This document shows positions 920 to 58,315 of a stretch of 61,252 nt of DNA, piece by piece. A program made the translations under genes and the position numbers. A model generated the notes under the pieces. The model searched no databases. It saw only the letters and a program-made list of their open reading frames with translations, and had not been told where the DNA came from. The stretch is from Bigelowiella natans CCMP2755 (taxonomy: Eukaryota; Protista; Cercozoa), in contig ADNK01000747.1 in assembly GCA_000320545.1 (NCBI GenBank), forward strand, positions 1-61,252. Reading direction: 5' to 3'. Every line of letters starts with the position of its first letter. Position 1 is the first letter of the stretch.

Positions 920-1600
920 TTTGTATATGCATATCTAGCCATGTATGTCTTAGATTATATCAATATAAGATTATGTATACACATACACATGATCCGCGAG
1001 CATGATAATATGACATATTAGCTTGCGCCAACCATACGTAGCACTCATAGCACATGAATTTTAAGCTTGTGACTAGAGCTAGAGAGCTGTTCATTTCGCG
1101 AGCACATGCACACAGCTAGACAATGTCCATACATACACATCTAGCAATCTAGCAATTAATAGATGTCTAGCTAGAGATGTCTAGATGTGGCGCATATTGC
1201 ATGTCTAGCATAGGCTAGATAGGCCACATAATCCATCGCAGTCTATCATGCAAGACAAGATAAATGAATATCTGGTTCGAATGTGCGCGCATCGTCTTTA
1301 TCACTAGATGAATACTCGCTGTTTGTGTGGTGTGAATGTCATGCTAATAACCAGCCATAATGACCGTAAATCTAGAAGCGCATGGGATGAAAGGTAGAAA
1401 GTTATTTGCCAAGTAGCCCGCTTATACGCGTGATGATGCGAACTAGCGAATGGAACATGCGTCACAGATAAGCTTTGCTCTTACTGATATTAGCAGAAAC
1501 TTAGACACTTCTCTCTTTATTGTAGAATCTTTATATGTAATTGAACATGTCGCGGTTCAGCCTTGCTAGCTTGCTGGGTGTGCTTACACATCATCCAACG
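920..1600. other. CTAG/CATG/TGCA-rich 3'-intergenic block (convergent junction)
   Basis: 10 CTAG in 1073-1218, many CATG/TGCA, and few GG/CC or GAA/TTC runs. Confidence 0.7.
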
Positions 1601-1621
1601 TTTGATATTTTTTGTGGATTG

Positions 1622-3571
1622 TTACTGGATTGAAATCGCCTTTTCTGCGGGGTACTTTATTTCGTATCGGTAAGGGATCTGCTTCTCCTCCCCAGGCCCC
1701 ACGGTAACAAGCCACACAACGTTGTTGGTGTGAGGATTAAATCGTATGCGCGTGTTTCGCCAGCTAGCTTCACCCTCTCCGGCCGCTGCGCCCTCCTCCG
1801 GGAGAGCGGAGTGCTTCTCCATACTCTCCCACGATGGCTGAATCAAGTCCACTTTGATCTGGTCAATGGTAGACTTGGGGAGCTGGAGGGCAACGCTGAT
1901 TCTGATGGGAACGTTTTTGTTGTTTTTGATGGTCGTCAGAGATTTGTGCAGGGAGACGGACTTCTTGCTGGAGAGCAATCCGCCCTCCTTGCGCTCCTGG
2001 TTCCTCTCCAGTTTGTAAATGATCTTGATGGCATCGTCTGTGCCGACGAACGTGGAGAAGTATTCGCCAGGGCTGATCACTTCCTTGATCTCGGTGTTGC
2101 AGACGTAGTTCCCGTCAAAGAAGCAACGAACATTCGCACTCGGAAGGAAGGGAAATGCGCTTGTGTTCTTGGCCCTGACTTGGAAGTAGGCCTTGGGCGA
2201 GAGAGATGGGACGCCGTAAAACATAGATTTCATTGCAAGAGGGGCGATTCCGATGCATGATTTGTGTGGTTTCCTCCCGGAAAGAATGGTGGCCTTCCTT
2301 TTGATGAGGAACTGCGTGGCAAAGCCCTGCTTCACTGCCGCCGTCGCCACCTGAGCGGCCTCCGCATTGTAATTCCGTTTTTCCTCCATTCCATCCAGTC
2401 TCCCATCGTCCTGGATCATAAAGTTTTGTTGTATGTTGACTCGTGCGAAGTAGTTCTCGGCCCTCTTCGCTCGGCCACGCGCGACGCTGCTAATGCTGTT
2501 CGTTGCTGGTCTAACTGGTGGTCCTGGATGTGAATGGTATAACCTCCTTGGCTGCTGCCATGACACCCATTGCGTCGGTATGGAGGGCGGTTTGCCGCCG
2601 ATAGCGGGGGTCGCGGTGGAGAGGCGGAGCTGGACGTTCTCCCAGTCTTCACCCGTTGTTTGAGTCACCATCCCGTAGTACACAAACGTCATACTCTCCG
2701 ATTTACCCTCGACGCGACAATCATAGCTCGACTCCCAAGTGGCCCCACCGACAGTGTAGATTAGGAAAAGTTTCGCCTTCTTCTGCTCTCCACTAGCTTC
2801 TGTTTTTGCTTCATCACTATTGGCCTCCGCTGTGTTGGGTTTTGAGGCTTGCACGATTACATGCACGTCGTGGCGGTAAAATCCCCCTGCTTTCGGATTC
2901 GCTATCCTATTAATTTCGTCCCTGCATTGTTTAATCTCGATGGCGAGCTTTCCGAGCTTCTCAGTGATCTCCTGGGACTTGCTATCGAAGACCTTGGTCT
3001 GTTTTTGATAGAATTCGAGTGTGCTCATAACCGTCTTTAGATCAGCGAAAGGCGCGGCTGCCGCTCCTCCGCTCTTTTGTGAAGAGGCAGAGAAAGATGT
3101 TACGGTGGAAGTATAGGAGTCGACCATCGTTCTCTCCTTGACTATTCTCTCTTGCGCCATGCGAAGCCTGGTTTGCTCTTTCGTGAGAGTCTCAAGCTCC
3201 GCATTCTTTCCTTGTTTATCCCCTTTAGGAGGGACGATCCATTTCTTGTCGTACTGAACTTCATGGATGGTGAACTGCCCCTCCCCATTGACTCTGATGC
3301 TGTCGGTCATGACGCTGTTTGGAAGACCCATAACTATTAGCTCGTGCGATGATCCAGGCTCCATCTCATGCTCGATCTCACGGATTACTTCGGCCCTGTC
3401 CTTAAACACCGTAACAGCACGGATGGGGGCGTTCTTCACATCTATCTCAGTTTTCACAAGGGGTACGTCGGCGTTCTCCACCAGCTCAAAAGTCTCCGCA
3501 CCACTACTCCTCCCACCGGCAGAGGACGTTCCCGGGCTAAGCAGCTTGTAGTCTTTCTGTTCTCCTTCCAT
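1622..3571 (-). CDS. DUF4140/DUF4139 (mucoidy inhibitor MuiA-like) protein, intronless
   Basis: Long ORF with motifs IRAVTVFKDRAEV, a coiled coil, ATWESSYDCR, VTQTTGEDWENVQLRLST and a C-terminal GEEKQIPYRYEIKYP. Likely ATG at 3571 (MEGEQK). Confidence 0.85.
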   Translation of the reverse strand: MEGEQKDYKLLSPGTSSAGGRSSGAETFELVENADVPLVKTEIDVKNAPIRAVTVFKDRAEVIREIEHEMEPGSSHELIVMGLPNSVMTDSIRVNGEGQFTIHEVQYDKKWIVPPKGDKQGKNAELETLTKEQTRLRMAQERIVKERTMVDSYTSTVTSFSASSQKSGGAAAAPFADLKTVMSTLEFYQKQTKVFDSKSQEITEKLGKLAIEIKQCRDEINRIANPKAGGFYRHDVHVIVQASKPNTAEANSDEAKTEASGEQKKAKLFLIYTVGGATWESSYDCRVEGKSESMTFVYYGMVTQTTGEDWENVQLRLSTATPAIGGKPPSIPTQWVSWQQPRRLYHSHPGPPVRPATNSISSVARGRAKRAENYFARVNIQQNFMIQDDGRLDGMEEKRNYNAEAAQVATAAVKQGFATQFLIKRKATILSGRKPHKSCIGIAPLAMKSMFYGVPSLSPKAYFQVRAKNTSAFPFLPSANVRCFFDGNYVCNTEIKEVISPGEYFSTFVGTDDAIKIIYKLERNQERKEGGLLSSKKSVSLHKSLTTIKNNKNVPIRISVALQLPKSTIDQIKVDLIQPSWESMEKHSALPEEGAAAGEGEASWRNTRIRFNPHTNNVVWLVTVGPGEEKQIPYRYEIKYPAEKAISIQ

Positions 3572-4153
3572 CGATTTGGTTTTTGATCGTTGTTCGATGA
3601 CGTTGGTCGGAGGGTTCTGAGAAAGAAGATTTGGTCGGGTTCTGAAGAATCCAAGAAGATATTTGCTGCTGCATCTCCCCTTCGTACATACTCTACGACT
3701 TACCACCGTCCTAGTCGTAGGAAAAATACCGCTTCGAAATATTGTTCTGAACTCGTAGTGCGATCGTAAGAAAACTAAAAACGCATTTCATTTCGGTTAA
3801 AAGACAACATATATTTCTGCTCTCTGTAAATTCCGTATTTTTCTTTTTTCTTCCTACAGTTTCGAGTCGAAAAAACTGAGATCCTTCGTTTGAACACCGA
3901 TGTCGTCTGGCATGTCCGTGCTCTCCGAAAAGAGAAGAAAACAGGATGAACTGTTCCCATGCGACATCCACCTAAGGCCAGTTGCCGCAAATGAGGATTT
4001 AAAGGAAAAAACGCAGCGGGATATCTATCTACGACATTCCTTCGGCCACTATATTCCGGTACTTCCCCCGTTTTTTTCTGGGTTGCTTAGAGCAAATACG
4101 TCTTAACTTTCGAAAGCGGACGAGGAGAAAGGACTTGGAGGCAGTCAACAGAG

Positions 4154-6584
4154 ATGCAGCAACATGACCTCCAGGCTATCTCATTTGGACTTTCTGCGAA
4201 AGAGGATCTCCTGCTCCATGGGAGTCTCGAAAGGGTGAAAAAGGGCACCTATCTTCACGTGAAGATGGAGGTTAACGAGCCACTCAAGAAAGCCTTTCAG
4301 GTAGGAATTCCTTTTTTAATTTTTGTACTCTGTACGACCGATTTATCAGGGCATTTGTTTTCTTTTCAACAGTACTTTTGTAACAAGCACAAGCTCGACA
4401 TCAATGGTATGGTTTTTAAACTCGGGAACAGAGAGATTAAAGTTACGGAGTCGGCCGAGAACGTAGGTGCACTCACAGAATCAAAATTACATCAGAGCTA
4501 AAATACATATATTTCCAGATATTTATGAAGCAACAAGACATCATATACATCTACAATCGGCGAAAGCTACCGGAAAGCAACTTCTGCGAGCAAATGTGGT
4601 CAATGTACAAGAACGGCGAATTCACAGACGTCTGTCTCGTAGTTGAAGGAAAGAAATTCAATGTACATAAAGCGTTTCTCTCAGCCCGCAGCGAAAAATT
4701 TAGGTCAGGAAAAGGCCACCTTACATGAGTATTGTTTTAGTGAAATATTTGGAAAGAAAGTATGAACAGTTTCAACCTTTTGCACTTACCCAGCTCGTAC
4801 ACACCGTATTTGGGTATCATCGTTTTTCTCACCTACTTCACTTACAGGGCATTATTTCGAACGAAATTGAAGGAATCGGAGCAGAAAACAATTTCTCTTA
4901 TTCAAGATCGTCCTGGAAGTGCCGAGGCTTTCGCCTTGCTCCTTGAATACTTGTACACAGACACTGTTAGGGTGAGATACATCGTGCAAATACTTTCATC
5001 AGCTCTGTTTTCGCCTCTACCATACATCGTTTCATAAGAAAAAGACACCTCATCGCTTCGACTTGTCATGACGCATTTTAGGAGCTTGCATCAGATTAAA
5101 TTGTTCACTTGAAGCCTTCTACCAGAGTCATATCTGAATATTCACTATCCCCCTCCATCCTCGATCCTACGTTATATACAATGAGACGCGACGACATGGG
5201 AACTTAGCTTTCGATCCCCCTCCCCTTACCTGTTTACAGTCATTCACAGAAATTCGCTATCCACCACAAGAGATCGAAGAGTCCTCGTTGTCTTCGATCC
5301 ATATTAGAGGGAAGGCGGAAATGAGCTCCAAGAGCGAAATCGTCCAAGACAGCAAAAGGTCGTGGTAGGTAGACACAAAGATTAGCCTTACATTTGGAAG
5401 GAAAAAAGGAAGAAGAGGGATGAAACCATGGGGAAGGGGAGATAATGTGTGCGCCCGCGGGGGGGGGGTAGGGACACAGAAATAGAGCCGCTGCTAACAT
5501 ATAATAGAATCTAAATTGGCTGAATTGCTTGAATTTCTCCATCAACAGCATTGGTGACGGTGAAAAGCCGGATGAAGTCCCCCTAATCCCCTCTGATGAG
5601 GAGGCGACGGGAGTAATGACGACAGGAGAGCATCATCAGCTTCCATCATCATCATCATCATCATTATCATTATCATCATCATCATCATCATCAAAACCAC
5701 CACCATCAAGTGCACAACTACCTTCGGAAGTGACCGTTGTGAACCTTTATTCCATGGCGGAGGAGTACCTAGTAGACCGGCTGAAAGCAATGTGCGAAGT
5801 CCAGCTAAGGAAGATGCTGACGCCAAGGAACGCTCCGATCGTAAGTTGATGATGTTAACATACTACCAGTAGTAGTAAAAGAATATACATATCATGAATC
5901 AACCAAAGCCGACTTCTTCGCCAACGGCCGAGTTCGTTGTATCTTGCAAGTAGTAAATACATTTTGATTTTCTAACAGTTTTTAATAAGTAAGTCATGCA
6001 CGATTCCTTCGATCCGATGATAATACTGCTAGTACTACTACTACCGCTGCTGCTGCTAAGCTACTCTGCATGCGAAGAAGCCTACCTATCGCCCCTAAGA
6101 TGTAGATACGTTTTGGTTGTTATCACATCGCTCTAGATCCTTTACCATACGGACCTTCTAAATGCGGAGGCTTTAAAGGATCACTGCTTTGGCATTATCA
6201 TAGAGAATTATGGAGAGAGTAAGTTCATCCCAGTAGCAACATTATAGAAATAGTAAGTTTCAATATAAAATATAAAATATTCGTTTTTCGCCAATCTCTT
6301 CACAAGTTTGCTCAGCCGACGTGGTAATTTTTCAACTACACGAATATTGCTTTATTGCTTTGGATTTATGTGCTACGACAGCGCTCTATGGGGAACAGGT
6401 CAAGTCGCTTCCCAAGCCTCTCATACTCGAGTTATTACAGAGATTTGCGGAGTCGAGGAATCCAAACTTGAAGAAGCGCCGCTCTAGGGATGGAGATGAT
6501 AGTAGCGGCAGCACCAGGGGCAGTACAAAAAGACGGGCACCCTACCGGAAAGTGCGTTTTGATGTAGCTGCTGATCCGATTTGA
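4154..6584 (+). CDS. SUMO-like (Rad60-SLD type) domain + BTB/POZ-BACK-like protein, about 8 exons
   Basis: Spliced exons give YLHVKMEVNEPLKKAFQYFCNKHKLDINGMVFKLGNREIKVTESAENIFMKQQDII (SUMO fold), then FTDVCLVVEGKKFNVHKAFLSARSEKFRALF...FALLLEYLYTD and LYSMAEEYLVDRLKAMCE (BTB). Confidence 0.85.
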
Positions 6585-7143
6585 ATTAGTACATTGTTTA
6601 CACTATGTAATGCGTGCTTGTGCACATGTGTACATGCTGTGCCCCCACGCGCTAAGACTGTTACAAGCTGATCGATCTGTGTCTACACTGGTAAAAATGC
6701 AAATGTTTTGTCATGCATTTTCCACTTGTGCTCATGTGTTTCTGCGACATCGCATGTACACATACACGTATGCTATCAAGCTAGCAAGGCGTCAACAGCT
6801 TGGCATGTTTACTACTTGTTGGACATTGTTGCTGTTTGGATACATTTTTCATCTACTCTGCGAAACAATGAGTCCGTCCACGCACAATCTAGCTAGCTAG
6901 CAATCTGGACAATGTGCGCAAACTCCAATCGTCTAGCAGATCTATAATAGAGGTGTGTCACATCCGTGGCAATAATTCAGCAGTGTTATTAGATGGATTA
7001 GGTTGCCCATACTAGTGCAATGTTTAGCTGCAAGAGTGATCTGTTAACTGATGTTGCGCGACCAGTGACGTACGCTAGTACGTAGTGTACACTGGTACAC
7101 ACACATATACTTGTCTAGATGTGCATTGTGATGGCATGACAAA

Positions 7144-7298
7144 GATGATGATGATGATGAGCTCATTGTCTTACCAGCTTACCTCTTTTGCATAGCAGAT
7201 GTACGTGTGGGGATGACTTCATGAGCTGGCGGACAAGAAGCTGCGTCTCCGCACGTCTTTGAATGCTACAAGCAAGCAAGCAGTGCTACTACTCAGTT
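7144..7298 (-). repeat. Diverged duplicate of the exon and flanking intron sequence at ~8498-8630
   Basis: Near-identical gagctcattgtcttacc...ttcatgagctggcggacaagaagctg.gtctccgcacgtctttgaatgctacaagcaag.aagcagtgctactactcagtt in both places. Confidence 0.9.
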
Positions 7299-7939
7299 GC
7301 AATCCCAAGATCATGTTGCGACGCGTAGCTGAGGTAGCCTTGCGACAACACACTGATCATCACAAGCGCCTGACTAGCTGAGGGCGAGATCGGAGATTTG
7401 CACAAATGGCACAGCGCATGTGTTGTCAGATGGCGCTAGCCGAATGCTACAAGGTAGTAGCGTCATGGACATCACGCGCATGCAATGTGTCTCATTTGCA
7501 TGATGAATTACGGTTCATTGTACGATTTACTTGCCACTATGCGACGCCGCTTTTTGCAGCAGATACTACTCTTCATAAAGTCCTCTCCAGAATTTCTGAA
7601 CTCTCATTTATGCTGCTTCTCGAATTTGCGTTTCAGCTTCAGATTTATTCAACATATTCTGTGATTTAGCTCCGGTTCCGATTGTGCTAGAGGGGGTATA
7701 AAACGAGTACATTCAGAATGGATTTGGAGGAGTGAAAGGACAGACGTGATGTGTGTGTTCTAGAGTGCAGCGATGATGCAAACCTGATTGACATGCTGTG
7801 ATTCGCATTTGATGGCTTGGCACTTGACCGGACCCCATTTATTTCTACAAAGATTTACGGGAGAGTCGTGTCTCAGAGGAGGTAGTTCCATTGGTTGGAA
7901 GGTTTCTTCCCCACCACAAGAAACTCTTACGATGTTAGA

Positions 7940-8040
7940 AACGTTGACAACTGTCGACGACACGGCACGGCAATGGCGGCCATTAACGTTGACAGCTGTC
8001 GACGACACGGCACGGCAATGGCGGTCCCAATGGCCGCCAT
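7940..8040. repeat. 45-bp-period tandem duplication overlapping a 12-bp perfect inverted repeat
   Basis: aacgttgaca(a/g)ctgtcgacgacacggcacggcaatggcgg occurs at 7940 and 7985. atggcggccatt (7973-7984) pairs with aatggccgccat (8029-8040). Confidence 0.85.
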
Positions 8041-8084
8041 CGGCGTATTCTTTTGAACTTTATTATTTTTTGTTATGGTAGGAA

Positions 8085-13060
<4,976 letters not shown>

Positions 13061-14962: not shown

Positions 14963-15873
14963 ATTCATAGATTGACTATATTAGCGATGCCGCCAGTCAT
15001 GCCAAAGATATCTAGTGTGGAAATTGAGCTGGCGGACACAAAGGAGGCTCATTCAACTTCGTTGAGAGTCTCCCCCTATTTCGATAGAATTCTTGAGTTT
15101 GCAAAGCATAGGCCGTCGTTATTTATCTTGTGTGCGCATCATATATATACGAAGCATAGTCAAAATCTTTGAGAAAGGGCCAGTATATTTAGTCGATTGA
15201 TGCTCCAATAAGTCCTATACTATGCCATGTAGCATATGTTTTAATCTCTGGTAATCGTATAATATACCCACTCTAGATAGCATGAGATATAACTTAATAC
15301 ATCGTAACGTTAATTGCAGCTGAGGAACACCTGTACATGCTTAATGCGCGTAACGCGCGATGGGCTCGCACGCACGCGCCGCGGTATGCAACCGCGTCAG
15401 ATACCCAGAGCTAATCTTCAGTCTCTGGGGTGTTGCGACTAAAAACGATACAGGCCATCATTGCACAGTGAAAATTCAAAATTGTATTATATTTGGGGAA
15501 ATGCATGCGCACAAATTTTTATACTCAATTTAGAAGAACTATATATACGCACATATGTGCTTTCAAAGTGCACAAGTGCTCATTGGTACATGTGTCGTTT
15601 TTGGTCGCAACGCACCCTAGAGCCTACTGCATTGCACAGCATGAATGATTAAGCATGATTTGCATAACGTTTTACTTAAAGGTGTATATGTCAATGTACA
15701 TGTGCATGTACATGTACAACATACACATACTAGACACATACACATAAGCTTTACTACATTGTCACACCGTACCATGCAATAATAAGGCACATAATATGGC
15801 TTCGTTCGGATCGATCGAAAAGGTGCTTGCTAAGAACCCATTTATTCGGCATTTGTCGGAAGGGATCAGTTTG

Positions 15874-41742: not shown

Positions 41743-41784
<42 letters not shown>

Positions 41785-41812: not shown

Positions 41813-41849
<37 letters not shown>

Positions 41850-42189: not shown

Positions 42190-42232
<43 letters not shown>

Positions 42233-42862: not shown

Positions 42863-42931
<69 letters not shown>

Positions 42932-44925: not shown

Positions 44926-46052
44926 ATGGCGTGCGAAACCTTGGTGAAGCTGATTTGCGAGGATGGCTTCGTTCTGGCAGGAACGTTGTTTCGTCCGAGC
45001 TCTTCTCCTCGATCACCAATCACTAGGCCGGCGATTGTCATCTCGTGTGCTACTGGGGTACATAATGCAAATCTCGGAGACATAGTTGAGCACAAAACTC
45101 CTTCCAAATTTAGGTTACGCAGGCCTTCTATCATCCATTTGCCCGGTACTTGTGCTCCTGTGGCTGTGCAGTCCTCACCTATGACTTCCGAGGGATAGGG
45201 TTGTCGTTCCCCGGTTGGGTTCCATCGCAGAAGGACAAAGATGGTTGACACTAACAGAAAACATTTGCCTCTGAAATCGTAGATTTGATGCTTAAGAATG
45301 GACATCATTATTTTCTAGGAACCCCTCTCTTTTTAGATGAGGCGAAGAAGATCGCCGCCCTTAAGTATGAGCTCTGTAACACGACGATTTCGACTCACTG
45401 GGGCAAGCTAGATCAATCCGCGGCCTTGAAATTCATGATCGATTTGTTTCCTAATTGTGAGCTCGCAGTGGTCGGCCACTCTCTCGGTGGACACATAAGT
45501 GGGATGTCTAAATGGAGGGACCACATCAAGCGATTCGTCTTTATCTCTGTCAACAACGCCCATTACACCTGCGCTAGGAAGCCCTTGAGTCGATTGCTCG
45601 AGATGTTCGCCATCCCCGCTGCGGCAGTGGCATGTGGATACTTGCCCACGAAAAGATTGGGCTTGTTTGAGAACCTCCCGAGGGACGCGGCGAGAGAATG
45701 GGCATTCTTTTCGAGGCAGCGAGATTACATTTTTTCGCTGCCCGGATACAAAGAGCGCTATCGAGATTTCAAAACTGACATTCTTGCGGTTAGCTTCACT
45801 GACGACGAGTATAGCGTAGAGCCCGCATTCAGCAGCCTCCTCAACGTTTTCCCTCGCTGTAAAATTGAACATGTTCATCTTGCGCCTGATCGTGTTGGGC
45901 TGAAAAGAGTGGGGCACATGGGGTTTTTCCGTGCAAAGAACAAAGAGAAATTGTGGAACTTGGTTGGAAACTTCTTGCTTGGAACGACAAAAGACAAAGG
46001 AAACAAAAATATCGCTGACAGTCTTGGGACATCTTTAGCTTCAAAATTATAA
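44926..46052 (+). CDS. Alpha/beta hydrolase (COG4757-type) with C-terminal peroxisomal PTS1 (SKL)
   Basis: DGFVLAGTLF, ATGVTQAFYHPFARYL, VLTYDFRGIG, GHSLGG nucleophile elbow, SFTDD, VGHMGFFR; ends -ASKL*. Two introns. Confidence 0.85.
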
Positions 46053-46901
46053 CAAAGTATATAAAAGCCGATTGCGCGCCCTCATCAGTAATCATAAACA
46101 ATGGTTTACAGCTGCACCCCAATAATCACATGTTGGCAGCATACATATGGCAGCAAATAGCGCGGTGTGTATCGCGATCGTGCGTGCTATACATGGAAGT
46201 ACAAGTGGTGAGCTGTAATATGACTTCAATAAATTTTAGCTATGTAGCGCAACCTTGCGTTTAGCTAGTAGCTAGCTAGTAGGGCATATGTTATATGTCT
46301 TCTAGTCTTCAGGAAGATGATATGTACATGTAGCGGTGCTGCACTTATATTTGCTGCATGCTGTTCTAGTGTTGTGGTTGTCACTATATACATATATAGC
46401 TATACAAATTTACATCCGTCTCACATATATAGCTATACAAATTTGCACTCATAAATTTTGCCTGGTTACTTACTTAAAGATCACGTATCTGGCACATGCT
46501 CGATCGTCGCGAACATCCAGACGAACGCCTTGACGTATCGTAGTCTCGCGCGCAACGTGGCTACTTATTTGGCTAGGCTATGCGTTGCTATAGCAATATG
46601 CAATTACGTGTTTGTCTGACATGCGTACGGATGGATCGATCTCAATAACCAGCATTGAGCATCCCGTACGCGCCTTGTTGCACTGACTACACGTTAGAAG
46701 TGTTTATGTCGAGGCTAGCGTACAATGCTATATATCGGTATACATTGTTTCTATGTACAAATGGGCATGATGCTGCAACAAATTGAAACATCAGTGTTTC
46801 AGTACAGCCTAGATATACATGTAAATCCTATAAATCCTGCGTCCCTTTCACCTTTGCATTTGATGACAAGATCCCGCGGGACACGCATATGCATGTGATC
46901 G

Positions 46902-48645
46902 TTACTTTTTGAGTTGAGGAAACCACAACACGAAAGAAGACCTAAGTTCTTTTGTGGCACTATTGATCTCATCATTGAGAAGCACCTGATATTTTGTCAG
47001 AATCAATCATTATTCATTCATCAAAATTCAAATTTATGAAGTCGTCCACCTTATCGAAAAACTCCGGCTTCTCTTTCAAAAATTGTAATTCCCGCTGTGA
47101 TGTCTTTAAACGTTTGAGAATTTTGTCCTCCGACTCTGTGCCCCGACCCCGTAACCTCTTCTCAAGCTCTATTATTCCCCCAGAAGTCGTAATAAACAGA
47201 AACTTCGCTTCAACACCAGACTCCTTAATAGTTTGAGCGCCTTGGACGTCTATTTCCAATATGCAAACGCCTCCCTTCTCGCATACCTTATTCACTGCAG
47301 CTTTGCTGGTACCATAATACTTTCCATGGACGTCAGCTAACTCAAGAAATTCTTTATTGTCACGCATCGCCTCAAACGTCTGCTTGTCAACGAAGTGGTA
47401 ATGTGTGCCGTCTTTCTCTCCGCTCCTCGGCCCACGGGTGGTGTGCGAGATCGCAACGCCGAACATCCCAGGATATTGTTTTTTCAGTATGCCAAGGATG
47501 GTTCCCTTGCCTACTGCGGAGGGGCCACAAATTACGACAAGATTTGCCTTTGACCCGAGCTTCTGTTCCACATTCTTTGGGCGGGGTGTTTCGTTCTTGT
47601 TGAGAGCACCAGACTCGATAATCTTCTCGCTCTCAGCCGCGGAGGCCAACGGTAAAGCACCAATGCTTAATAGTTTAAGAGGGTTTTTTTCCGTGCCATT
47701 GTTATCGCCATCATCGTTAAAGCCCAACATGGACCGACCGGTTTTTGCACGAAGCTTCTCCAGTGCGACCTTACGAACAGCTGTCAGGTACTCACAAAGT
47801 GACACCTTCTTATCGGAATCTAAATCAATGGAGGTAAACGCCCTTACGAGCTTGTGTTTCCCTTGGCTGGCCTCCTTCATCGTTACTTGATCCTCTTGAA
47901 TACCGAGAAATCCCGCTACTTCCCGATTACCGGCACGCACTTGCTTGATCAGCTCCGTCATGGTCACGTAACCGTCAGAGTTCCGGTCGATTTGGTTGAA
48001 CTGTTTCTCGGCTCTCTTTAATAGCTCAGCAATCTTCATGGCAGACATTACAGTGGGATCAGCTGTCTTCAGCACACTCTCTGGCCAGTCGCAATCTGCC
48101 GATCGGGTGGGGACGGCGTCGAAAGAGAAGAAAGTAAAACAAGAGAAAGAGAGGGGGGGGGGATGATTAGGGGAGGGGGGGGAGGGGGGACAGCAAAGGT
48201 GGATAAAATGACAGCACAATGTTATTGAACTGTCCTGATTGAAAGCAGTATATATCGCCAATACCCTGAATATAGTCAATGAGAAACTGCAGAGGATCCT
48301 CTGGTGTTTTCATGGCCAACACATTGATCAGGTCCTAATGATAGGTATGTCAACCTCAGTTATTGCTATTGCCAGGAACAACTTCTACGTGCACCTCCAT
48401 CAGAAGCTCCACGGTCTGATCGTCGTAGTGGCGATTCCTCTGCTGCAAGAGCGTAGAATAAAGCAACGAAATTTACATGGTCAGCATCGACCTTATCATC
48501 GAATTGAAACAAATGTTTTTGTTAAATATGAGGCCTCTCGTGTTGCATAGAAAGAGTCTGTACTTCTACGCGCCAGTGAAGCAAAGGCAGCGATATACGG
48601 GGCGTCTAGGAATAGATCACGTACCCCTCTTTCCACGACCTCCAT
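46902..48645 (-). CDS. Guanylate kinase with N-terminal Dpy-30/RIIa-type docking motif and EF-hand pair
   Basis: ICGPSAVGKGT, SHTTRGPRSGEKDGTHYHFV, HGKYYGTS and LEIDVQGA. EF loops DRNSDGYVTMTE and DLDSDKKVSLCE. Upstream exons LLME|DLINVLAMKTPEDPLQFLIDYI. Last exon ends WFPQLKK*. Start uncertain. Confidence 0.85.
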
Positions 48646-49139
48646 CCTTGCTGTTTCTCGAGTGTGTGCTCGTATGAACGAACTAACTGCGACTCAGAAA
48701 AAGAACACGGCGTAGATATCTCTCAAAAGATATCTGCGACAAGGATAAATCTGTGTCGCAGAGTCGTTTCACCCTCAGCTCAAGTAGATTGTGAAAAAAA
48801 ACCGTGTGTGTGTCATCAGGGTGCTCGTGAAGCAGTTTCCCCTCGGAAAGGCGACCCGCGCTCGCTAGCTCCCCATCTCGTCTTCTCTGTCCTCTTTTCT
48901 GGTCTGTGCTTTGAGGCCCTTTCAGAGCATTCGAGGAATCCTTGTACGGACCAAACAAAAACCTCCCCGTCTGCCGTCTGTCGGTATTCAAGTGAAAACT
49001 GACTGCAGCTGAATTATCATTGAGAGGGGAGATTTGGTGTCGATCATGCCCAATCTCAGGAAGTATCTCACAGTTTGAACTGTTTCGTAATAGGTTTGCC
49101 ACTCAGTTCTGAAGAGCTTCCGTACTTTGCACGCAGATT

Positions 49140-50185
49140 ATGAAGGGCAGGTTTTCATTATCAGGCTCCAGGCCGAGATCTAAGTTGAGCTCAAAGCGTG
49201 GCTCTGCGAAGTCGAAGAGGTTTACGCCTAGCCGATCGATGTCACTCACCGCTACAACATCATCGTCCCCACAATTGACACCGCTTAGCCCCCCAAGAAT
49301 ATCCGCTCCTACATCACCAGATCTGAGGAGAGCTGTATCTATGTTTCCCCCGATAACTTCACCTCGCTCTCCAACAACCCCTCGCTCTCCCTCATTGAAG
49401 TCCCCGAAATCCTCGAAGTCAACACCAACTTATATGCTGCCAACCCGAAGGAAAAGCACGCTGGGAAGACCAGTTAAGGACAGAATTCTTCCAAAAGTGG
49501 GCCCGAACCTAAAGCAAATGGTGAAGAATACAGAATCGCGGCGGGTTTTTTTGGGTCGAAAAGGTATTCTTCAGCTCCATGCGTGATCCCCTCCTCTCCC
49601 TGTCTCCCAATATGTATTTGTGCCTAGATACATTTCCCTCTTATGCCTTTGATTATTCTATAAAATATATTAGATAAGATCATCAAGTTAGTAGCGGAGG
49701 ATGGAGCCGAATTCAAGATCAGCCGCAGATGGGCTTGCATATCATCGTATATAAAAAAAGCGTGTGAAGACGACAAAGTCTCAACAGTAACAATCACAAA
49801 AGTAGACGAAGAAAGTCTAGAAAGAATTTGTGAGTATATGGAAAACCGAAAAGGGGATGACTTCATCAAAGTTTCTAAGACATTGAAGGTGACCATGTTG
49901 GATAATGTCGGCAAGGATTTTGCCTGGTGTGCAAAGTGGATCGATCTCAGAGCTAGACACCGACCGAAGTTTTACAAATTAATTGCTGCTGCAAATCACA
50001 TGGGCATCAGCGGCCTTGTCAGCCTTGGAGTTACGAAAATCGCGACATTGCTGAAGTACTGTAGAACTGAGGACATTGATCGTGTTTTGGACCCACATAT
50101 CACCGATGGACAACTTCGCCAATTGCGGAAATTCGTTGTTGTCAATGGCAAGAGTAAAGAAAAGAGTTACAATTCCGGCACATAG
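49140..50185 (+). CDS. Skp1-family protein with Ser/Pro-rich N-terminal extension (intron ~49564-49673)
   Basis: IIKLVAEDGAEFKISRRWACISSYIK, VDEESLERICEYM and LIAAANHMGISGLVSLGVTKIATLLK. Confidence 0.8.
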
Positions 50186-50887
50186 ACTGGCCCTGCACAA
50201 TCTCATCTTTTTCGGACAATAGCTGAGATCAAGATTACTAGATTAGTAATAAGCCATGTATCTCAACTTGATACTGCCTTTCCAGGAGTTGAATATTTGA
50301 ACACAAACGAAGGTTGCATTTCTTCCATTGGAAAATGAAAGATTCTATCAAATTTCTGCAGGAAATAGTATTTTGATAATTCTAGGAATTGTCTGATGAG
50401 ATTGAGACACATCTCGTCTGGATATATCTAAAGATGTATTTTTGAAGCTCACTATACTGTATACTCCCGCTCTGTATCTTCAGAGCAATAACGATGCCAC
50501 AATTAGCATATGAAATAACAAAGCTTTTCATACACATTTAATAGCATGCTAGCATGTTCTAATGCGACAATGCGACATCGCGCGCTGAGCAGCTGATATA
50601 GTTACGTAAGATACACAATAGTACGTCTCGAAGTAACGATTTCCTAATGTGTGCGTGCAGTTGTTTGTAGTTTTTAAATCCTCGTAGATCGTGCAGGACA
50701 AATATGATGATAATCAGGCACCTGCCCTGTACGATACACACATACTTAATAAATTCATATGCGCAATAGCACGAGCAAGTACATACAAGTGGCCATCATG
50801 TAAAGAAGCAACTTTCTTGGATATCGGTATATATCCTAGTATATATTTCCTGCATAAATGCTTTGACATTTGTCGAATCAAATTTTG

Positions 50888-53250
50888 TCATCTCCTTGAG
50901 AACACAACTCCATAGACAAGAAAGCGTTTCCGGCCTTGGTTCCACTGCCACGGCTCCAGAAGTTTGATACTTTTGGGTTCGACCAGGTCATGAAGTCTGA
51001 GATAGCAGTTGCAGCGAGAAATTCGCGGGAATTTTGCAAGTACAAGGCGGAAGCTGAGACTACGTTAGTTTCAATGTATGTCGAGTATTGAGTGAGCATC
51101 TAGCATGCGAATATTTTTACATTTTAAATCAACTTTTGCTCTGTCTCTTGTCATTGTACCTTCCTGTTTTGAGTGCCGCGACTACGGATTCCCTTCGTGT
51201 TCCATGGAAAAAGTTGTTTTCCTCCTCCGCTAAATCGGCCAGTCCTTCCCAGTCACCCTCTGCTTTTAATTTTGCATACTTCGAGCCTTTCATCGACAGA
51301 AAAGATACCATGTCGATGACTACAATCCCTACACCTGCAACAACAAGGACGGATAACTAAGATGCTTGGATAGATAGTATTAGCGATCGAAAGACGTCGT
51401 ATCACTATAAGCGAAATCAAACCGCCAGGCTTTAAGACGCTGGCCAGGGCCTTATGAAGTAAGAGGTTGAAACAGCTATAGTAAGAAGTAAAAATGCACG
51501 ACGAGGGAAATGGAATTCATCGTCGACTAATCCCTACACAGTTGCAAAGATTATGATGATGCTGCGATTCACCTACCTCTAAATATCGATATCGAAGCTG
51601 GATCAGGAGAGGTAACTGCATAGTAAACGTTATTATCGTTGGTGGTGATATTGAATGGTTTTGGTGCTGCCTCTTTTCTCGGGAGATATCGAAAGGTCGT
51701 ATTTGCATCACGATAAGAGAGAAGATATCTGTATATATGATAGCCGCTAAATAGCTTGTAAATATGATAATACAAATGTCTGTGGGTGTAGCTGATTGCT
51801 CAGGTGGCTAACCAAGGCGTCTACCTGCCAAGAATGAGAAAGTGTTAGTCAAGTAACTCGATACTCTGTGTTAGCGCAATACAATGGTTAGAAAAGGGGA
51901 GAGATGGCATGGCGACATACGATTTGAGAAAGCACGCATATGGAGATGCTGACGTCAAAACCTAAGTGAAGCATGGTTATATTTATGGCCCAAACTTAAT
52001 GATAACCCTCGTTGATTTTAATCCCCACTTTTAGCTTCAATGACCTTTGCTCTCCACAACTATTGGTATGCTGAGATTTCCCATCAGATGAGCATCAATA
52101 GAGCCCTGGACCAGAGGGTCGTCATCCTGAGAAATGATTTAGATTGAAATATTAAAAGCGGAAGTATGACAAATGGGACCACTACGGAAGACGCAGTTTC
52201 AAAAAGAGTTGCGCTTTTGCAGCAAATCACTGCTGCGAGAGCCAGCACTTCGTTGTCCCCTCCCGATGTATATGTTGTATTAATAATTTGTTCTTAATCA
52301 AAATTACGTTACCAGAAGCATCCTGCGCAGTAACTCGACTGTTTGCTGTGGCAGTGCTCCTATTTCCAAACAGAAAAAACGTGAAGGGTATGACATTCGT
52401 ACATGCGTTGCCAACTGTTGAAATGATATTCCGAGATCAACAGTTATTGCTGTATTTCTCCACAAATTATCGGTGATAGTAAGATTTTGGTTTAACTCCT
52501 AGATTTTGCGACTTGTTCTCGATAAAGACAATTGGTTTACCTTGGTGATCTTGCTGCGCGTTAGCATACGAAGCAAGAGTCGGGAAGAATTTGCTACCGG
52601 CAAGGTCGAGGTTTCCTACAATGCCGATATGCTGCTGCAGTAACGGCTTGACCCTATCTGAAATTAGAAGAATCCCCAATAAATTGAGTGATATGATTTT
52701 ATGAAAATCCAATTGAATTTCACTGTTATGAATTGATCCCCCAAAAGCCACAAGACTACCCCGCATGTGCTATTTGACTAAAATTTCATCACATTCTCCC
52801 CACCTCTGGCGAACGTAAGAGCGTCTTCATCCACATCCACTAGATGAATATAGGCATACCTTTCTGCAAGTAGATCCAAATCTACATCATTACAGTTTCC
52901 AGCTCCAATATCTATCAACGTCTGGGTTATTTGTAGCGAAAAAATCATTTTTGTCACGTAGAACGCGATTGAGCTGTACAACCATGTTTCCCCGGTCTAG
53001 TCTTCTTTCAACTTCATTGAGGATGCTCATAACCTACCATTTTAAATAATCACGCCGTTTGTATTTTCATGCAATCTACAAGTGGCAATGCAGTGTCTAC
53101 ATGATTGCGATGATCCGTATACTCCTCCCACCCGGATCGTGACTGGGACGAAGTAAAATTTAGTTTTTCAGAAGATCGAAGCGATGTGGTAGTTACACCA
53201 GAATGTTATTCTTGTGTTCATTCATCCAGATACGAGATAGAGGACTAGAA
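50888..53250 (-). CDS. Putative class I SAM-dependent methyltransferase of bacterial type, multi-exon
   Basis: WEEYTDHRNH, LIDIGAGNCNDVDLDLLAERYAYIHLVDVDEDAL (motifs I and II), NFFHGT and PWQWNQGRKRFLVYGVVF*. The 5' end is unresolved and may extend toward 54400. Confidence 0.65.
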
Positions 53251-54928
53251 GGTCCCTCCTACTCCCCACACATTCACAAACTTCAATAACGTTAATAAGA
53301 CTACTTTGAACGTGCATCCACTTTCTTTTCAGCCTCGTGAAACCACCCTATGAACAATATCATGGCCCCGAGTCCCTAACCAGTTGAAAGAATTTATAAA
53401 TGTAATGTAGTCATTTCTGAAGAATCCGACCAGGCCAAAAAATGTAACAAATCGTTGCCACGGATGGGTGCTCTTTTCCCCAAATGAATTCACCATCGAT
53501 GGATGATTGGCTCTTTCTGGACGCCCTTTCCGCCTTCCATTTTTTCTTTGCCTTTACGAAAACCACACGTTAGTCGAGGGACACCAAAGCGAGGTACGGG
53601 TCGAAGCCCTTCTAACCTGGTCATGCTGCTATTCGCGGAAGCGAGGTCTTCAATTTCATTGCTTACGACAAGGAGAACGAGTACTTCTCAATAGAAAACC
53701 CCCTTCGATAGCTAGCAGTCCCCATCTCCGCCTCAAAACCCAATATCGGAAACTGGCCGATTTTCAGAGATTCTATTCACGGAGACTCCTCCGAGACGCT
53801 CGAATACCGTCATTGACAGTTCGCGGGAAGCCATTGCTACGTACGAGCTCTGTCCAGGATCCAACCTTCTCAACCACTAAGCTCGAAAGCGAGTTATGCG
53901 CCTCGTTGGCAATGGTTAATTGGGAATGCAGCAGGTTTGTGAGCAACTATGTTTAGAAACATCACCTTGGAAAAACACACGTCTCTATTCAGGTGCCAGT
54001 TTGTTGGTAACTCGGAAACGTCAGCCATTTGCGAGTAAGTTCGCGCCTTTGAGCTCTGATTTTCTTCGGCTAATGACCTTTGGTTCCTGGTCAGATTGTG
54101 TGACGAGCCAAGACCAGACATGAAAAGAGATATTCAAAAGAAACCTGCATCGAAACTGGAAACAAGTTCGGTGGATGCGGGCATTGATGAGGTATGGTTG
54201 GCAGTGGCTGCACGCGCTTCTTCACTGATTTCACTCTATTTTTCATGATAGATAATAAAGTTGGGAATAACCTCCGATCGCTCCGTTTGCCGCGTAGCTT
54301 TACGGGAAGCCGATGTAGCCCTCTTTTCAACAGATGAAATACGTATTGAGGTGTCTTGTTCTCTCTACAGGGGGATTTGGAGACTGCGATCAACTTTATA
54401 TGTGACCAAAAATCAGAGGTGAGAAACCAAACAATTTGTGATATGGATATGAATCTAATGTACCCTATTGCTTAGAGTTCAAAGAAAAGCAAGAAGAAAA
54501 GAATTCCCCGAATTCCACGAGTACAGAAAATATATCAACCAATGATTCCTAATCGTGAAGTTTTCAAAAAAAAATTTAAAAAAGTATCGTATAATCGATG
54601 AATCAGCTTTGCAACATAGGATACGGACCCAAAATTTTCGTCGTCTCTTCGTAATGAACTTAAATTTTCACTATTCAGAAAACGGATCGCCGTGATAGCC
54701 TGGAGACTGCTGGCTCCAAATCAGATCACAGCTTCAGGTACTATTGCCATCTTCACACTTTCGGTCAATGCAAATGAGTACATATTTTTTCGAATCTGGC
54801 ACCCAATGGCAACAATACCATGCATAAATGACATGCATGATTGTGGTGATGATGATAATTATACGTATTCACATGCATATTCGTGATATTCGTAAATATC
54901 TAGTGTGATATCCCCGTCTCCGAGGAAA

Positions 54929-57730
54929 ATGCCCCCAATTAAGGACTCCATCCAGCACATTACCGATCTAACAGGCTGTAATACTACTAAGCTCTAATCA
55001 TTAAAATGACCTAGCAAGCACTTTTGTTTGGCATGAGGAAGACGAATCATGTTATGTCGTACGCTATCAGGCAAGAGAACCGATCTAATACACCGGTTAC
55101 TGCTAATGCACCGGCACAATAGAAACGCCGTCGCCGATCAACTGTTCTCTCACAGTGAGGAGGAATTGTGGAGGATGATCAAGAAGAAGGACCGCAGCAA
55201 GCGAGAGAAGTCCCTTCGGTCGCTCGTGAAGAGCGAAGAGAACAAGTCTTCAATGGCAGCCTCACAGAGAGCAATGCGCTCCGTTGACATGGCAGCAAAA
55301 AGAAACAGGAGACAGCATAGTAGTGAAAATTCTTCATCTTCGAAGAGGCAACGCCAGTCTCAGGATGATGATGATGATGATGATGTTGGTAGCACTCGAC
55401 GGAAAGGACGCCTACGCGCTTGGAATAGTAAACCCAAGAAAAAAAGAAGAAACACAGTTATTGAGAGCGATGAGGAGGACGAGGAAGACGACGATATGGC
55501 TCGCTTTGTCGTTGACGACGACGAAGTCGAAGAAGAGGTAACCCTCATTGAGGAGCAAGAAGAGCTTGCGCCAATCGAAAGCAGCGACGAAGAGGAGAGT
55601 GAGGAGTATGAAGATGAGGATGAATTCGACTCGGAAAAAGTGATTCAAGAGGTTGTCGACACCTGCCAACTCCATGGAAAAGAGATTAAAGAAGGAATCG
55701 TAAGCAAAGAGCCGCAAGTAAATGGGGAGGACATCAGTAAGCTAGGCCCTATCACCCTGAAGGAATTCCAGATTTACGGCGTGAGATGGCTCTATCGCCT
55801 CTTCGAACTGAACCTCAATGGTGTCCTCGCGGACGAAATGGGGCTTGGGAAAACTATCCAGACGATAGGACTACTGCGGCTGATACACAAACACCATCCA
55901 GAAGGTCGGAGTCATGGCCTAGCTGATATGCAGTTTTGGCGATTAGACACCATGAATCATGCATGCGCCATCTTCTTCTCCTGACCAACAATATTATCGC
56001 CCTCCACCCCCCTCCCCGCCCCCCCCTCTCTCTCTTGGTGTCTATCTGTATGCGTTTTAGGAGGGCCCAGCCTTATTGTAGCTCCAACAAGCGTCCTGGA
56101 TAACTGGATGCGGGAGTTCGGTAAGATTTGCCCTTCACTCAGGGTGGCAAAGTATCATGGCAGCCAAAAGGACCGCCTACATCTTCAGGCCGAACTCATC
56201 GACGGGAAGAGAACGCCGCTCTTCGACGTGCTGGTCACTTCCTACTCCATATTCGAAAAGGAGACCTCCAAATTCGACCGCGCTTGGGTGAGGAAAAGGC
56301 GATTTCGGTTCATGGTGCTGGACGAGGGCCACAACATAAAGAACCAGAAAGGCAGCCGATTTCTCTTTCTCTCCGGGGTCGGTGCGAAGCACAGGCTGAT
56401 ACTCTCAGGCACCCCCATCCAGAACAACATTCAGGAGCTACTAGCTCTGCTCGTGTTTCTGATGCCGGACATCTTCACACACGGGCAGTCGCAGGAGGTC
56501 CTTGGGGACATTGCGGATAAAGAGAGAAGCACCGACGTGTTCCGCAGGTTGCTAGAGCCATTCTGCCTAAGACGGGTGAAAACGCACGTTCTCAAGGAAA
56601 TGAGCCCGAAGAAGGACCTCATCTTCAAGCTCTGCCTTGCAGAAAAGCAGCGTGCTGCGTACGACACCGTGGTCTCAGACTACAAGAACTCCTATAAGCG
56701 AAGGCAGACTCACATCTTCACCGAGCTTCGTAAGGCGGCAAACCACCCCCTACTGCTCCGCCAGCACTACAACGACTCGATGCTCTCGGAGATCGCCGGG
56801 CTGCTCATCCACAGTCCGAACATGTCAATCCAGTGCAGAGACCCGCACGCGAAGGCGCTGGATATGCTTCGGAAGATGTCCGACTTCAGAATCCACATGA
56901 CGTGCGTGGAAGAGGGAGAGCACGTGCCGAAGCTGAACTCGTTCCTCCTCACGACGGAGCGCTTCAACAACGTAAACCTGCTCAAATCTGCCAAGTTTGA
57001 CTTTCTCAAGGAGAAGCTCCCGCAGCTGGTGGCCGAGGAGCACCGCGTGTTGATATTTAGCCAGTGGACGTCTCTCCTCGATATTCTTGAGCTTCTGATG
57101 GAGGATTTAGCCCTCCAGTACCTGAGACTTGACGGTTCAACCCCAGCAAGCGAGCGCCAGGAACTTATCGACACTTTCAATGGTGACAGTAACTTCAAGG
57201 TATTCCTCCTCTCGACGAAAAGCGGAGGAGTCGGCCTCAATCTAACCAGCGCGGACACGGTCATTCTCCACGACTTGGACTTCAACCCGCAGAATGACCT
57301 GCAGGCGGAGAATCGGTGCCATCGAATCGGGCAGAAAAAGCTGGTCACGGTGATGCGCCTAGTGAGCAAGGACACCGTCGACGAGCATATCTTCGCCATT
57401 GCAAACAAGAAAAGGAAGTTGAATGAGGCCGTGCTGGCACCGCCCGCGCAATCGAACAAGCAAGTGATGTCCTCGCTAATCAAGGAGCTTATGACTAGTG
57501 CGAAAAATAAAAGGAATGACGATAGGAAGAAGAATAAGCAGGGAGGGGCAGGAGGTGGAGCAACCCCGAAAACGAAAACAGGGTCAAAGCTGGGGGATAA
57601 GAAGATGTCCCAAGATTTTAAGGGTAAGAGCGCTCGTGCTAAAGCAGAGCAGGAGAATTCGCCACCGCGCAAGCAAAAAGCAGCGTCGTCCATGGAAGCA
57701 GAAGTCATATCGCTATTATCGTCCCAATAA
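54929..57730 (+). CDS. SMARCAD1/Fun30/ETL1-like SNF2 chromatin remodeller with N-terminal UBA/CUE-like motif
   Basis: [53 protein letters not shown] and [11 protein letters not shown]. Spliced N-terminus [20 protein letters not shown]...NAVADQLF. Introns ~54978-55070 and ~55904-56060. Confidence 0.9.
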
Positions 57731-58315
57731 AAGATGCCGTGATGCTGTAAATAGCACAGCCATTATTACGAGATGTTACTATAGCGATCGTTTAGATTGT
57801 GACTGAGTGATGACAATGTCGCATAATTGTTTGCCCTACGCAACGCTGATGAGACACAGGGTATAAAACGTTCATATTTTAGTATATTTCAATTGTGTCC
57901 GTGCTGAGGAGCGATTTCATTCCTCCTGCAATGTTCGGCATAACGCACGATCGAACCACTTGTCCAGAGGCATACATGCATGAGCTATGGTGAGAGGTAT
58001 TGTGCCATACTAGCATATTTTGCGTGATATAAAGCAACTGATGAACGTGCCTAGCTAGCTAGTCATAGTCTAGGTACACACATGCGCTTATGCAAATAAA
58101 GCATCATTCTGCATTGTGCATGCAATCTGATCGTGAACACCATGGCTATGTGCAGCAGCTGCTCGAACAGTGATAAGAGTTCATGTACGAATTAATGCAG
58201 ATTACGCATGATCAGTTATACATCATTATCACTTGCTGACTTGGGCTACTGGGAAAAGTGGTACACGTGCTGTGCGCTACATTGCAATGTGATTATTTCT
58301 CAACATGTTCCATCA

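Follow-up and report, generated by a model that had tools for sequence, protein, structure and literature searches.

What are the stretches of unusual sequence that lie beyond the ends of genes in the free-living alga Bigelowiella natans, and how might they have come about? The question is raised by a complete 61,252-bp contig (C2990) of the 91.4-Mb B. natans assembly (3,736 contigs), hereafter the window, along which the DNA switches at eleven places to a distinct dialect, rich in CTAG, CATG and TGCA and in the alternation of purines and pyrimidines (RY alternation). An earlier note had described these eleven blocks from the letters of the window and had offered two readings of them, either as the local scar of a base modification or as a selected terminator or insulator. 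The present analysis, which adds an independent sample of about 88 kb from other contigs of the same genome (149 kb together with the window), confirms that the blocks are a real, genome-wide feature, undescribed in the library searched. With a probability of roughly 0.55, we read them as inter-transcript DNA, mostly between convergent genes, that undergoes locally targeted insertional change and whose dialect consists of two separable layers, a stereotyped CTAG scar and a diffuse bias towards alternating base steps.

The blocks and their place beyond gene ends

Within the blocks as delimited by the earlier note, CTAG is raised 5.7-fold, GCTAGC 15.7-fold, CATG 3.9-fold and TGCA 2.9-fold, GTAC, GCGC and CGCG stand at about three times their level elsewhere, and all eight alternating palindromic tetramers are raised jointly. 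The ten copies of CTAG noted within 1073-1218 are exactly ten; the poverty in GG/CC and GAA/TTC seen by eye amounts to a rough halving (0.4-0.5 and 0.44-0.50 times, respectively), and CG, which had been said to persist along with CGCG, is found at 0.98 times, with CCGG at 0.1 times. A two-state hidden Markov model (HMM), run with microsatellites masked and with RY alternation as its sole input, finds 11 of the 11 blocks with borders near-identical to those first proposed, and adds three CTAG-free segments beside dinucleotide repeats (10761-11355, 12175-12384 and 61074-61251). With microsatellites again masked, RY alternation reaches 0.635 in the blocks against 0.497 in other non-coding DNA of equal GC content (0.43); RNA-defined introns stand at 0.468 and three divergent spacers at 0.41-0.47, one of them at 0.466, which sets the dialect apart from both the introns and the 5' spacers against which the earlier note had proposed to check it. 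The density of CTAG is 10.6 per kb in the blocks and 2.3 per kb in other non-coding DNA, and blocks of the same kind are found on the roughly 88 kb of other contigs. Their lengths span 317-961 bp. The blocks are also unrelated in sequence, as had been claimed: all-against-all BLAST of 24 spacers gives no homology among them, and a search of the whole 91.4 Mb finds no second copy of blocks 1 and 7 apart from a (TA)n run, so that the proposed check for alignment to a transposon family returned single-copy blocks and unrelated spacers.

The location of the blocks is best seen where transcript contigs of the same strain (100% identical contigs, run X15) could be mapped on 45500-51400 (5,901 letters). 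Here blocks 9 and 10 consist of untranscribed gaps between convergent genes (524 and 314 bp, respectively) together with parts of the adjoining 3' untranslated regions (UTRs), the strands of the transcripts being confirmed by their intron ends (GT..AG or CT..AC). Block 9 (46057-46822) lies between a plus-strand hydrolase gene, the transcript contig of which ends at 46116, and a minus-strand EF-hand/guanylate-kinase gene, the transcript contig of which carries CT..AC introns and ends at 46641, leaving a gap at 46117-46640; the stop codon of the guanylate-kinase gene was located by joining two RNA-supported exons. Block 10 (50480-50860) is likewise a convergent spacer, with a gap at 50534-50847 between a plus-strand transcript at 48812-50533 with a GT..AG intron and a minus-strand transcript that starts from 50848 and has a CT..AC intron. 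Alternation is 0.638 in the untranscribed gaps and 0.537 in the adjoining UTRs, and the transcript contigs end some 0-180 nt from the block borders.

The remaining nine blocks look convergent as well. Inward-pointing genes are backed by Pfam matches or clear motifs on eight block flanks, and it is such matches that show the genes pointing into blocks 1, 3, 5, 9 and 11; around blocks 4, 6, 7 and 8 the orientation is read from open reading frames (ORFs), GC content and a strand k-mer score, which was correct in 9 of 9 leave-one-out tests yet wrong at block 11, where a motif corrected the call. The codon and k-mer gene maps are too noisy for complete gene models, a Pfam search of ten flanking ORFs returned zero matches and an exact-protein look-up for annotation found no record. 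The placement of the blocks past stop codons at gene 3' ends, as first described, holds, and the three divergent spacers carry no block. The additional claim of shorter blocks at two tandem junctions was drawn from junctions that appear to be convergent, as RNA shows for block 10. No block is seen at any certain tandem junction in the window; at a probable one (54553-55033), between a predicted plus-strand gene that ends near 54552 and a plus-strand SNF2 gene that starts near 55034-55049, there is just a 131-bp patch of the dialect (54780-54910), with an alternation of 0.677 against 0.451 on both sides. Hence the dialect seems to be tied to the DNA past 3' ends in general, and the large blocks to convergent junctions.

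Along the window, block 1 (801-1600; 801-1367 in the HMM, alternation 0.631) holds 15 CTAG in 920-1600, is genome-unique and, as a spacer, has on its right the 3' end of a minus-strand DUF4139/DUF4140 gene with its stop at 1622. To its left, an imperfect foldback occupies 15-393, and 31-390 is rich in alternation in a simple window scan, though not in the HMM. Block 2 (6589-7560) follows a plus-strand ORF with its stop at 6584; its segment 7129-7302 (174 bp) is an 83%-identical copy of 8481-8634, 1.3 kb away, the pair differing by an 8-bp insertion (CTTACCAG beside CTTACC) and a 10-bp indel, neither of which is a CTAG scar. The HMM segment at 10761-11355, which has no CTAG and lies beside (CA)n runs, is probably intronic and outside the spacer class. 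Block 3 (15200-15800) precedes the 3' end of a minus-strand SURF1 gene (stop 15874), block 4 (18418-19200) would lie between a plus-strand ORF ending at 18276 or 18361 and a minus-strand ORF ending at 19313, and block 5 (21839-22400) precedes the 3' end of a minus-strand IBR-domain gene (stop 22498). At block 6 (29289-29720), the strand k-mer score and AT skew suggest a plus-strand gene on the left and a minus-strand gene on the right. Block 7 (33456-34360), the second longest, is genome-unique save for its (TA)n run. Block 8 (39103-39570) has a minus-strand acidic-protein gene on its right (stop 39648) and, on its left, a GC-rich plus-strand ORF ending at 39141 and, further out, the 5' exon of a tRNA-isopentenyltransferase-like gene on the minus strand; a convergent junction is likelier here than a tandem one. 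This first exon occupies 38263-38628 on the minus strand (GSTGVGKSKLAVDLA ... SADSMQV). Block 11 (57734-58322) starts after a plus-strand SNF2 helicase gene (stop 57730), and its junction is convergent because a minus-strand DEAD-box helicase gene (exon 58731-58922) lies on its right. Between blocks 8 and 9, exons of a Pcf11-like gene at 41487-43400 on the minus strand encode a zinc-finger stretch (KTCGRYYDSQGKLDECLDRHF) and include a CID-like exon. Beyond the stop of this gene, near 41487, alternating sequence extends for just about 50 bp; since a small plus-strand gene possibly ends near the same point, the two genes may converge here with hardly any spacer between them.

CTAG scars and their targets

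One of the two layers of the dialect is a stereotyped 8-bp insertion, made up of CTAG and a duplicate of a 4-bp target. Of the 185 CTAG in the window, 20 lie between identical 4-nt flanks, as do 62 of the 456 in the 149 kb, where about 2.4 would be expected, and no such effect is seen for other tetramers, for flanks of 3, 5 or 6 bp, or for other centre lengths or periods. The bases that precede the left copy are not CTAG, which excludes tandem duplication of an 8-mer. The target follows the dyad-symmetric consensus M-W-W-K in 28 of the 62 scars against a background of 10% (p = 2e-12); among the 53 scars in which the duplicated 4-mer is other than CTAG, the first target base is C or A in 43 and the last is G or T in 46. 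CTAG and CATG themselves match M-W-W-K, so scars can seed scars, and this explains the (CTAG)n arrays, CATGCTAGCATG, GCTAGC and TCTAGA. Genome-wide, CAAGCTAGCAAG has 1,815 matches, compared to 147 with another last base, 68 with a CATG centre, 39 with a 6-nt CTNNAG centre and 13 for the reversed control. The insertion process is therefore CTAG-specific and almost invariant, and scaling to the whole genome gives roughly 28,000-38,000 intact scars.

Scars are concentrated in the blocks. When blocks are defined without recourse to CTAG, they contain 2.22 scars per kb and the remaining DNA 0.146 per kb, a difference of 15-fold or more. Of the 20 scars in the window, 17 fall in the blocks as first described and three in the remainder, of which about 37 kb is other non-coding DNA. 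Tolerance of insertions alone does not explain this placement. Unrelated spacers repeatedly contain double scars, the targets of which overlap with an offset of one base. The scars of one spacer on another contig gather in its weakly alternating part, and the two layers are therefore partly independent.

Scars with one mismatched flank pair are in excess by about 20 against 60 intact in the sample, and number 147 against 1,815 at one position genome-wide. From this share we infer a scar divergence of about 0.04-0.075 per site which, at the published B. natans mutation rate of 3.46e-10 per site per generation, would correspond to a scar age of about 1-2e8 generations and to some 1.4-2.5e-4 new scars per genome per generation.

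In block 1, scars are found at 1075-1086 (AGAG-CTAG-AGAG), 1145-1156 (CAAT-CTAG-CAAT), 1177-1188 (ATGT-CTAG-ATGT), 1439-1450 (CGAA-CTAG-CGAA) and 1562-1573 (CTTG-CTAG-CTTG), and in block 2 at 6777-6788 (CAAG-CTAG-CAAG, the 12-mer present 1,815 times in the genome), 7071-7082 (TACG-CTAG-TACG) and 7370-7381 (CTGA-CTAG-CTGA), along with a (CTAG)3 at 6889-6900 that represents a scar within a CTAG target. The scar at 21202-21213 (GTAT-CTAG-GTAT) is outside every block. At 34134-34154, CATT-CTAG-CATTG-CTAG-ATTG is a double scar with overlapping targets one base apart, a 21-mer that an unrelated spacer of contig C3600 also contains. Further scars lie at 39441-39452 (CATG-CTAG-CATG, a 12-bp palindrome), at 39579-39590 (ATGG-CTAG-ATGG, just beyond the edge of block 8), at 46298-46309 (TCTT-CTAG-TCTT) and 46362-46373 (TGTT-CTAG-TGTT), both in the untranscribed gap of block 9, at 50545-50556 (CATG-CTAG-CATG, in the gap of block 10) and at 58006-58017 (CATA-CTAG-CATA), followed at 58051-58062 by another (CTAG)3 with a scar within a CTAG target. 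The scar at 50234-50245 (ATTA-CTAG-ATTA) lies in a transcribed 3' UTR and is shared by a contig from a diverged strain (RNA run X16). In that strain, a 12-nt insertion at 50233 (ATGCTGAGATCA), a near-tandem duplication in the 3' UTR, directly precedes this scar common to both strains. The RNA contigs from other strains do not extend into the untranscribed gaps. On contig C3600, the spacer at about 8050-8700 carries 12 CTAG scars and has weak alternation; positions 1-10000 of the same contig contain about 45 CCCTAA/TTAGGG units, the first at base 4, and the contig may start at a telomere.

Base-step bias and its rival explanations

The other layer is a bias of base steps. All six alternating step classes are raised about 1.3-fold (1.13-1.38) in the blocks relative to the rest of the sample, as inside/outside odds, and all four same-class steps (R-R/Y-Y) are reduced to about 0.75 (0.71-0.79). 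This step bias alone was shown to yield the excess of CATG, TGCA, GTAC, GCGC, CGCG and TATA: under a second-order Markov model of the blocks, the observed/expected ratio is 1.18 for CATG and 1.13 for TGCA, against 1.89 for CTAG, and no motif but CTAG exceeds what base-step composition predicts. CATGCA, known in plants as the RY/Sph motif, is the commonest 6-mer, but no 6- or 8-mer in the blocks lies above expectation, and no word beyond composition was found that would indicate an array of sites for a sequence-specific protein.

A possible source for this bias is suggested by mutation-accumulation lines of B. natans (bioRxiv 10.64898/2026.01.13.699255), the Table S2 of which reports 14 de novo insertions, such as ACA, ACACA, CATA, TGTG, CATTACA and TACGCGCAACA. 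In our own reading of that table, alternating steps make up 39 of the 46 internal steps of these insertions, some of which are plain microsatellite slippage, and nine of the 14 end in ACA (GACA, CAACA, ACA, ACACA, CATTACA, two 11-mers and AC with an adjacent G>A among them), which suggests a specific insertion process. Standing tandem duplications are not enriched for ACA endings (29 of 1,898). If the spacers took up such insertions by preference, as they do the CTAG unit, the step bias would follow. The same table contains one multinucleotide change, TGGC>AACA, and its authors do not comment on the ACA pattern. A 30-nt reference allele given in that study for a deletion is found letter for letter in the present assembly, in keeping with its assignment to B. 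natans. Ultraviolet dipyrimidine damage was rejected by reasoning as a cause of alternation, its transitions preserving pyrimidine-pyrimidine steps.

The alternative that survives best, which we consider doubtful but worth keeping in view, is that the blocks are a selected termination or topology buffer, in which alternation is kept since it is functional on both strands between head-on genes, whether as a topoisomerase II substrate, as a Z-DNA-prone torsion sink or as a nucleosome-favouring roadblock, the CTAG scars being the by-product of a nuclease. The sharp borders, which coincide with stop codons and transcript ends, the absence of the dialect from introns and divergent spacers at equal GC content and the small patch in the probable tandem junction all fit this proposal, as does the number of alternating runs of at least 12 (76 against 40 expected); topoisomerase II makes a staggered cut with a pair of 5' phosphates, and alternating purine-pyrimidine repeats are reportedly cleaved preferentially, to go by the title of the 1990 paper by Spitzner, Chung and Muller. 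Against it stand the lack of any motif other than CTAG above composition and the loss of phase memory after 4 nt: with microsatellites masked, the phase correlation of the alternation disappears past lag 4, save at lags 4 and 8. The blocks show no 10-bp, nucleosome-like periodicity and no added folding energy (mean z of -0.24 in blocks and -0.12 in controls relative to dinucleotide shuffles, with no excess of hairpins or cruciforms), and they vary in length without any shared homology. Plain period-4 duplications are weakly in excess (120 against 92 +/- 9), the surplus falling mainly within (CTAG)n and (CATG)n arrays, and their units do not follow the M-W-W-K pattern. The supercoiling that accumulates between convergent genes is positive, not negative, and so does not promote Z-DNA. 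The selected terminator or insulator of the earlier note is possible; the proximity of transcript ends to block borders speaks for it, and neither motif, fold, periodicity nor phase lends it sequence-specific or structural support.

A related proposal, in our view improbable, is that a resident and possibly domesticated dimeric nuclease works in the spacers with a 4-nt stagger at M-W-W-K, that alternation is maintained as its substrate and that the roughly 30,000 scars are its rare mis-repairs rather than the trail of a selfish element. If true, such an enzyme would cut at the points where converging transcripts terminate, for example in the resolution of torsional or head-on conflicts.

Somewhat weaker again is the notion that the blocks are old (CA)n, (TA)n and (TG)n microsatellites scrambled by transitions, with the RY pattern kept and the letters randomised. 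A ratio of transitions to transversions of 7 in B. natans, the abundance of such repeats in the introns of the window, the joint rise of eight out of eight alternating palindromic tetramers and the heavy tail of long alternating runs (30 of at least 16 against 5.7 expected) would all agree with such decay. However, substitutions alone would preserve phase, and no coherence is seen past lag 4 after masking; alternating runs of at least 8 cover just 18% of block bases (13% expected), with 82% in shorter runs, and pure microsatellites are scarcer in the blocks (85 bp per 6.6 kb, or 1.3%) than in other non-coding DNA (3.9%). The proposal also leaves unexplained why introns carry the microsatellites yet lack the diffuse bias. 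Long compound (CT)n(GT)n(AT)n, (CA)n, (TA)n and poly-G/C runs, about three times commoner in probable introns than in the blocks, are found at 9460-9640, 10680-10720, 11130-11165, 12060-12320, 25330-25430, 37230-37270 and 41745-41850.

The base-modification scar first suggested for the blocks, whereby deamination of methylated C would have turned CCGG and CGCG into CTAG, CATG and TGCA, agrees with the tenfold drop of CCGG alongside the rise of the three putative products, but is contradicted and retains hardly any probability. For CpG, the blocks have an observed/expected ratio of 1.01 and the RNA-defined gaps one of 1.25, both above that of other non-coding (0.94) and coding-like DNA (0.86) and of sequence elsewhere (0.69), and CGCG is tripled rather than lost; CATG and TGCA occur as step composition predicts, and the 4-bp target duplications at CTAG are an insertion signature beyond the reach of point mutation. 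CCGG is depleted because CC and GG steps are lost generally, and a change from CCGG to CTAG is, on reasoning, no path for CpG deamination, since after one hit the CpG is already gone from both strands. A graveyard of decayed transposons or of a repeat family, accumulated where insertions are tolerated, can draw on the high-copy repeat of about 240 bp that adjoins one spacer on another contig and on the 174-bp duplicate of nearby DNA in block 2, but is equally remote given that blocks 1 and 7 are single-copy, that the 24 spacers share no homology and that the bias resides in base steps, not in shared sequence.

Parent-element search and comparison with known systems

Under the reading of locally targeted insertion, a dimeric transposase-like enzyme would cut the M-W-W-K target with a 4-nt stagger, and repair would leave two nucleotides (5'-CT) on each flank, much as in the exit of a DNA transposon with 5'-CT...AG-3' ends. 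As to the alternating layer, for which the argument is weaker, the same zones may take up small insertions the spectrum of which is itself RY-alternating, with no need for motif-by-motif selection. We regard it as very probable that the CTAG layer is an enzymatic insertion or excision mark and put at even odds that the scars stem from a mobile DNA transposon; for the alternation layer, we lean slightly towards targeted insertional input over selection, in what is about an even choice.

Several observations weigh against this reading. Scars occupy 472 of 19,264 block bp (2.5%) and account for about a quarter to a third of block CTAGs; once they are removed, the observed/expected ratio of CTAG is still 1.75, and CATG, TGCA and alternation are unchanged. 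Perfect palindromes of at least 12 bp number 40 against 17.6 +/- 4, and many of them, but not all, contain CTAG. Introns at equal GC content, which share the mutation spectrum, show no alternation, and the step bias therefore needs either regional targeting or selection. The uniformity of the footprint (1,815 matches with the 4-nt centre against 39 with the 6-nt centre) is far above that of usual excision scars, a CT...AG element with a 4-bp duplication was found nowhere in the 149 kb, and Harbinger transposases normally duplicate 3 bp and pogo transposases TA. Finally, no CTAG scar is among the 21 de novo indels of the mutation-accumulation lines, although this says little, since 0.4-0.8 events would be expected over the 3,132 generations covered.

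Among the known marks of transposon excision, a fixed-length flanking direct duplication is present and is strictly 4 bp, and a resident element with matching inverted ends was not found in the 149 kb, where a scan for N4-CT...AG-N4 with at least 12 of 14 inverted-repeat matches gave chance-like matches only. A 4.2-kb CT...AG candidate on contig C1000 was judged to be a chance match of two CTAG-rich spacers. The high-copy repeat of about 240 bp, rejected as a parent, has no inverted ends and shows only weak, sub-threshold snoRNA (small nucleolar RNA)-like matches, of the C/D-box type. This interspersed repeat (contig C3500:12954-13195) has sharp borders and adjoins a spacer block; across the genome, its first-look candidates number at least 612, and 53 matches were scored, with identities of 72-91%. 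With regard to enzymes, about 15 matches to transposases of the PIF/Harbinger type (DDE_Tnp_4) are present in the genome, several of them in intact open frames 350-527 codons long, along with two matches of the pogo type (DDE_1), whereas a DDE_3 profile search of the genome gave no match; piggyBac (DDE_Tnp_1_7, PF13843) had no match in the genome either, but nor did it in control genomes, so its absence is not shown. The 4-bp M-W-W-K duplication does not fit the 3-bp TWA duplication of PIF/Harbinger. Tc1/mariner and pogo are disfavoured by flanks that are arbitrary 4-mers instead of TA, as well as by the profile searches, and just five mariner footprints of the TACATGTA type were found; piggyBac, which excises seamlessly, is disfavoured by targets that are not TTAA and by the residue left behind.

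The RNA placement of the blocks, the genome-wide counts, the target consensus, the rate estimate and the limits of the scar explanation are new, and a literature search found no description of either the blocks or the CTAG scars in the library searched. If the targeted insertional reading is true, a free-living alga marks the DNA past its gene ends by a sequence class that can be read from base steps alone, and that DNA is the target of a micro-insertion process which makes almost no errors and runs at about 1e-4 events per genome and generation. The blocks would then predict convergent gene ends, providing a cheap annotation aid in a genome with weak splice signals, and would serve as nature's own record of the chromatin sites at which an enzyme makes staggered cuts, as well as a test case for whether targeted mutation or selection for termination shapes composition past poly(A) sites. 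A chromatin paper on B. natans (PMC8887012) has published KAS-seq (kethoxal-assisted single-stranded DNA sequencing) and ATAC-seq (assay for transposase-accessible chromatin with sequencing) data and does not discuss nuclear gene ends; with ATAC-seq, KAS-seq, Hi-C (chromosome conformation capture) and mutation-accumulation data in existence for this organism, the question is directly testable.

Known systems offer partial parallels. The canonical footprint of Tc1/mariner elements such as Sleeping Beauty consists of two copies of the target duplication around a few end nucleotides, CAG or CTG. The likeness is in the duplicated target that encloses a symmetric residue (here CT plus AG), a geometry that explains the constant palindromic filler; the difference lies in the 4-bp duplication of a loose M-W-W-K target in place of TA, in a footprint that is almost invariant in B. 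natans, with no matching element or DDE_3 found, and in a preference for spacers beyond gene ends. Bacterial IS5 duplicates 4 bp at YTAR sites such as CTAG, and eukaryotic Harbinger duplicates TWA. The IS5/PIF-Harbinger superfamily thus favours CTAG-like, dyad-symmetric, A/T-centred targets, and DDE_Tnp_4 is present here, but its eukaryotic members duplicate 3 bp, whereas here the target is M-W-W-K and CTAG is the filler and not just a target. Trapped topoisomerase II yields de novo duplications of 2-4 bp in yeast and in tumours. A filled-in 4-nt 5' stagger gives a 4-bp direct duplication, as seen here, and the enzyme is expected between convergent genes, yet its duplications have no filler, while in B. 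natans CTAG is always inserted. Base J, lastly, which the earlier note had invoked, resembles the blocks in being a genome-wide mark where converging transcription ends, in its case at the convergent strand-switch regions of kinetoplastids. It is, however, a chemical modification, whereas the blocks of B. natans are a sequence class for which the evidence, with CpG kept and targets duplicated, points to insertions.

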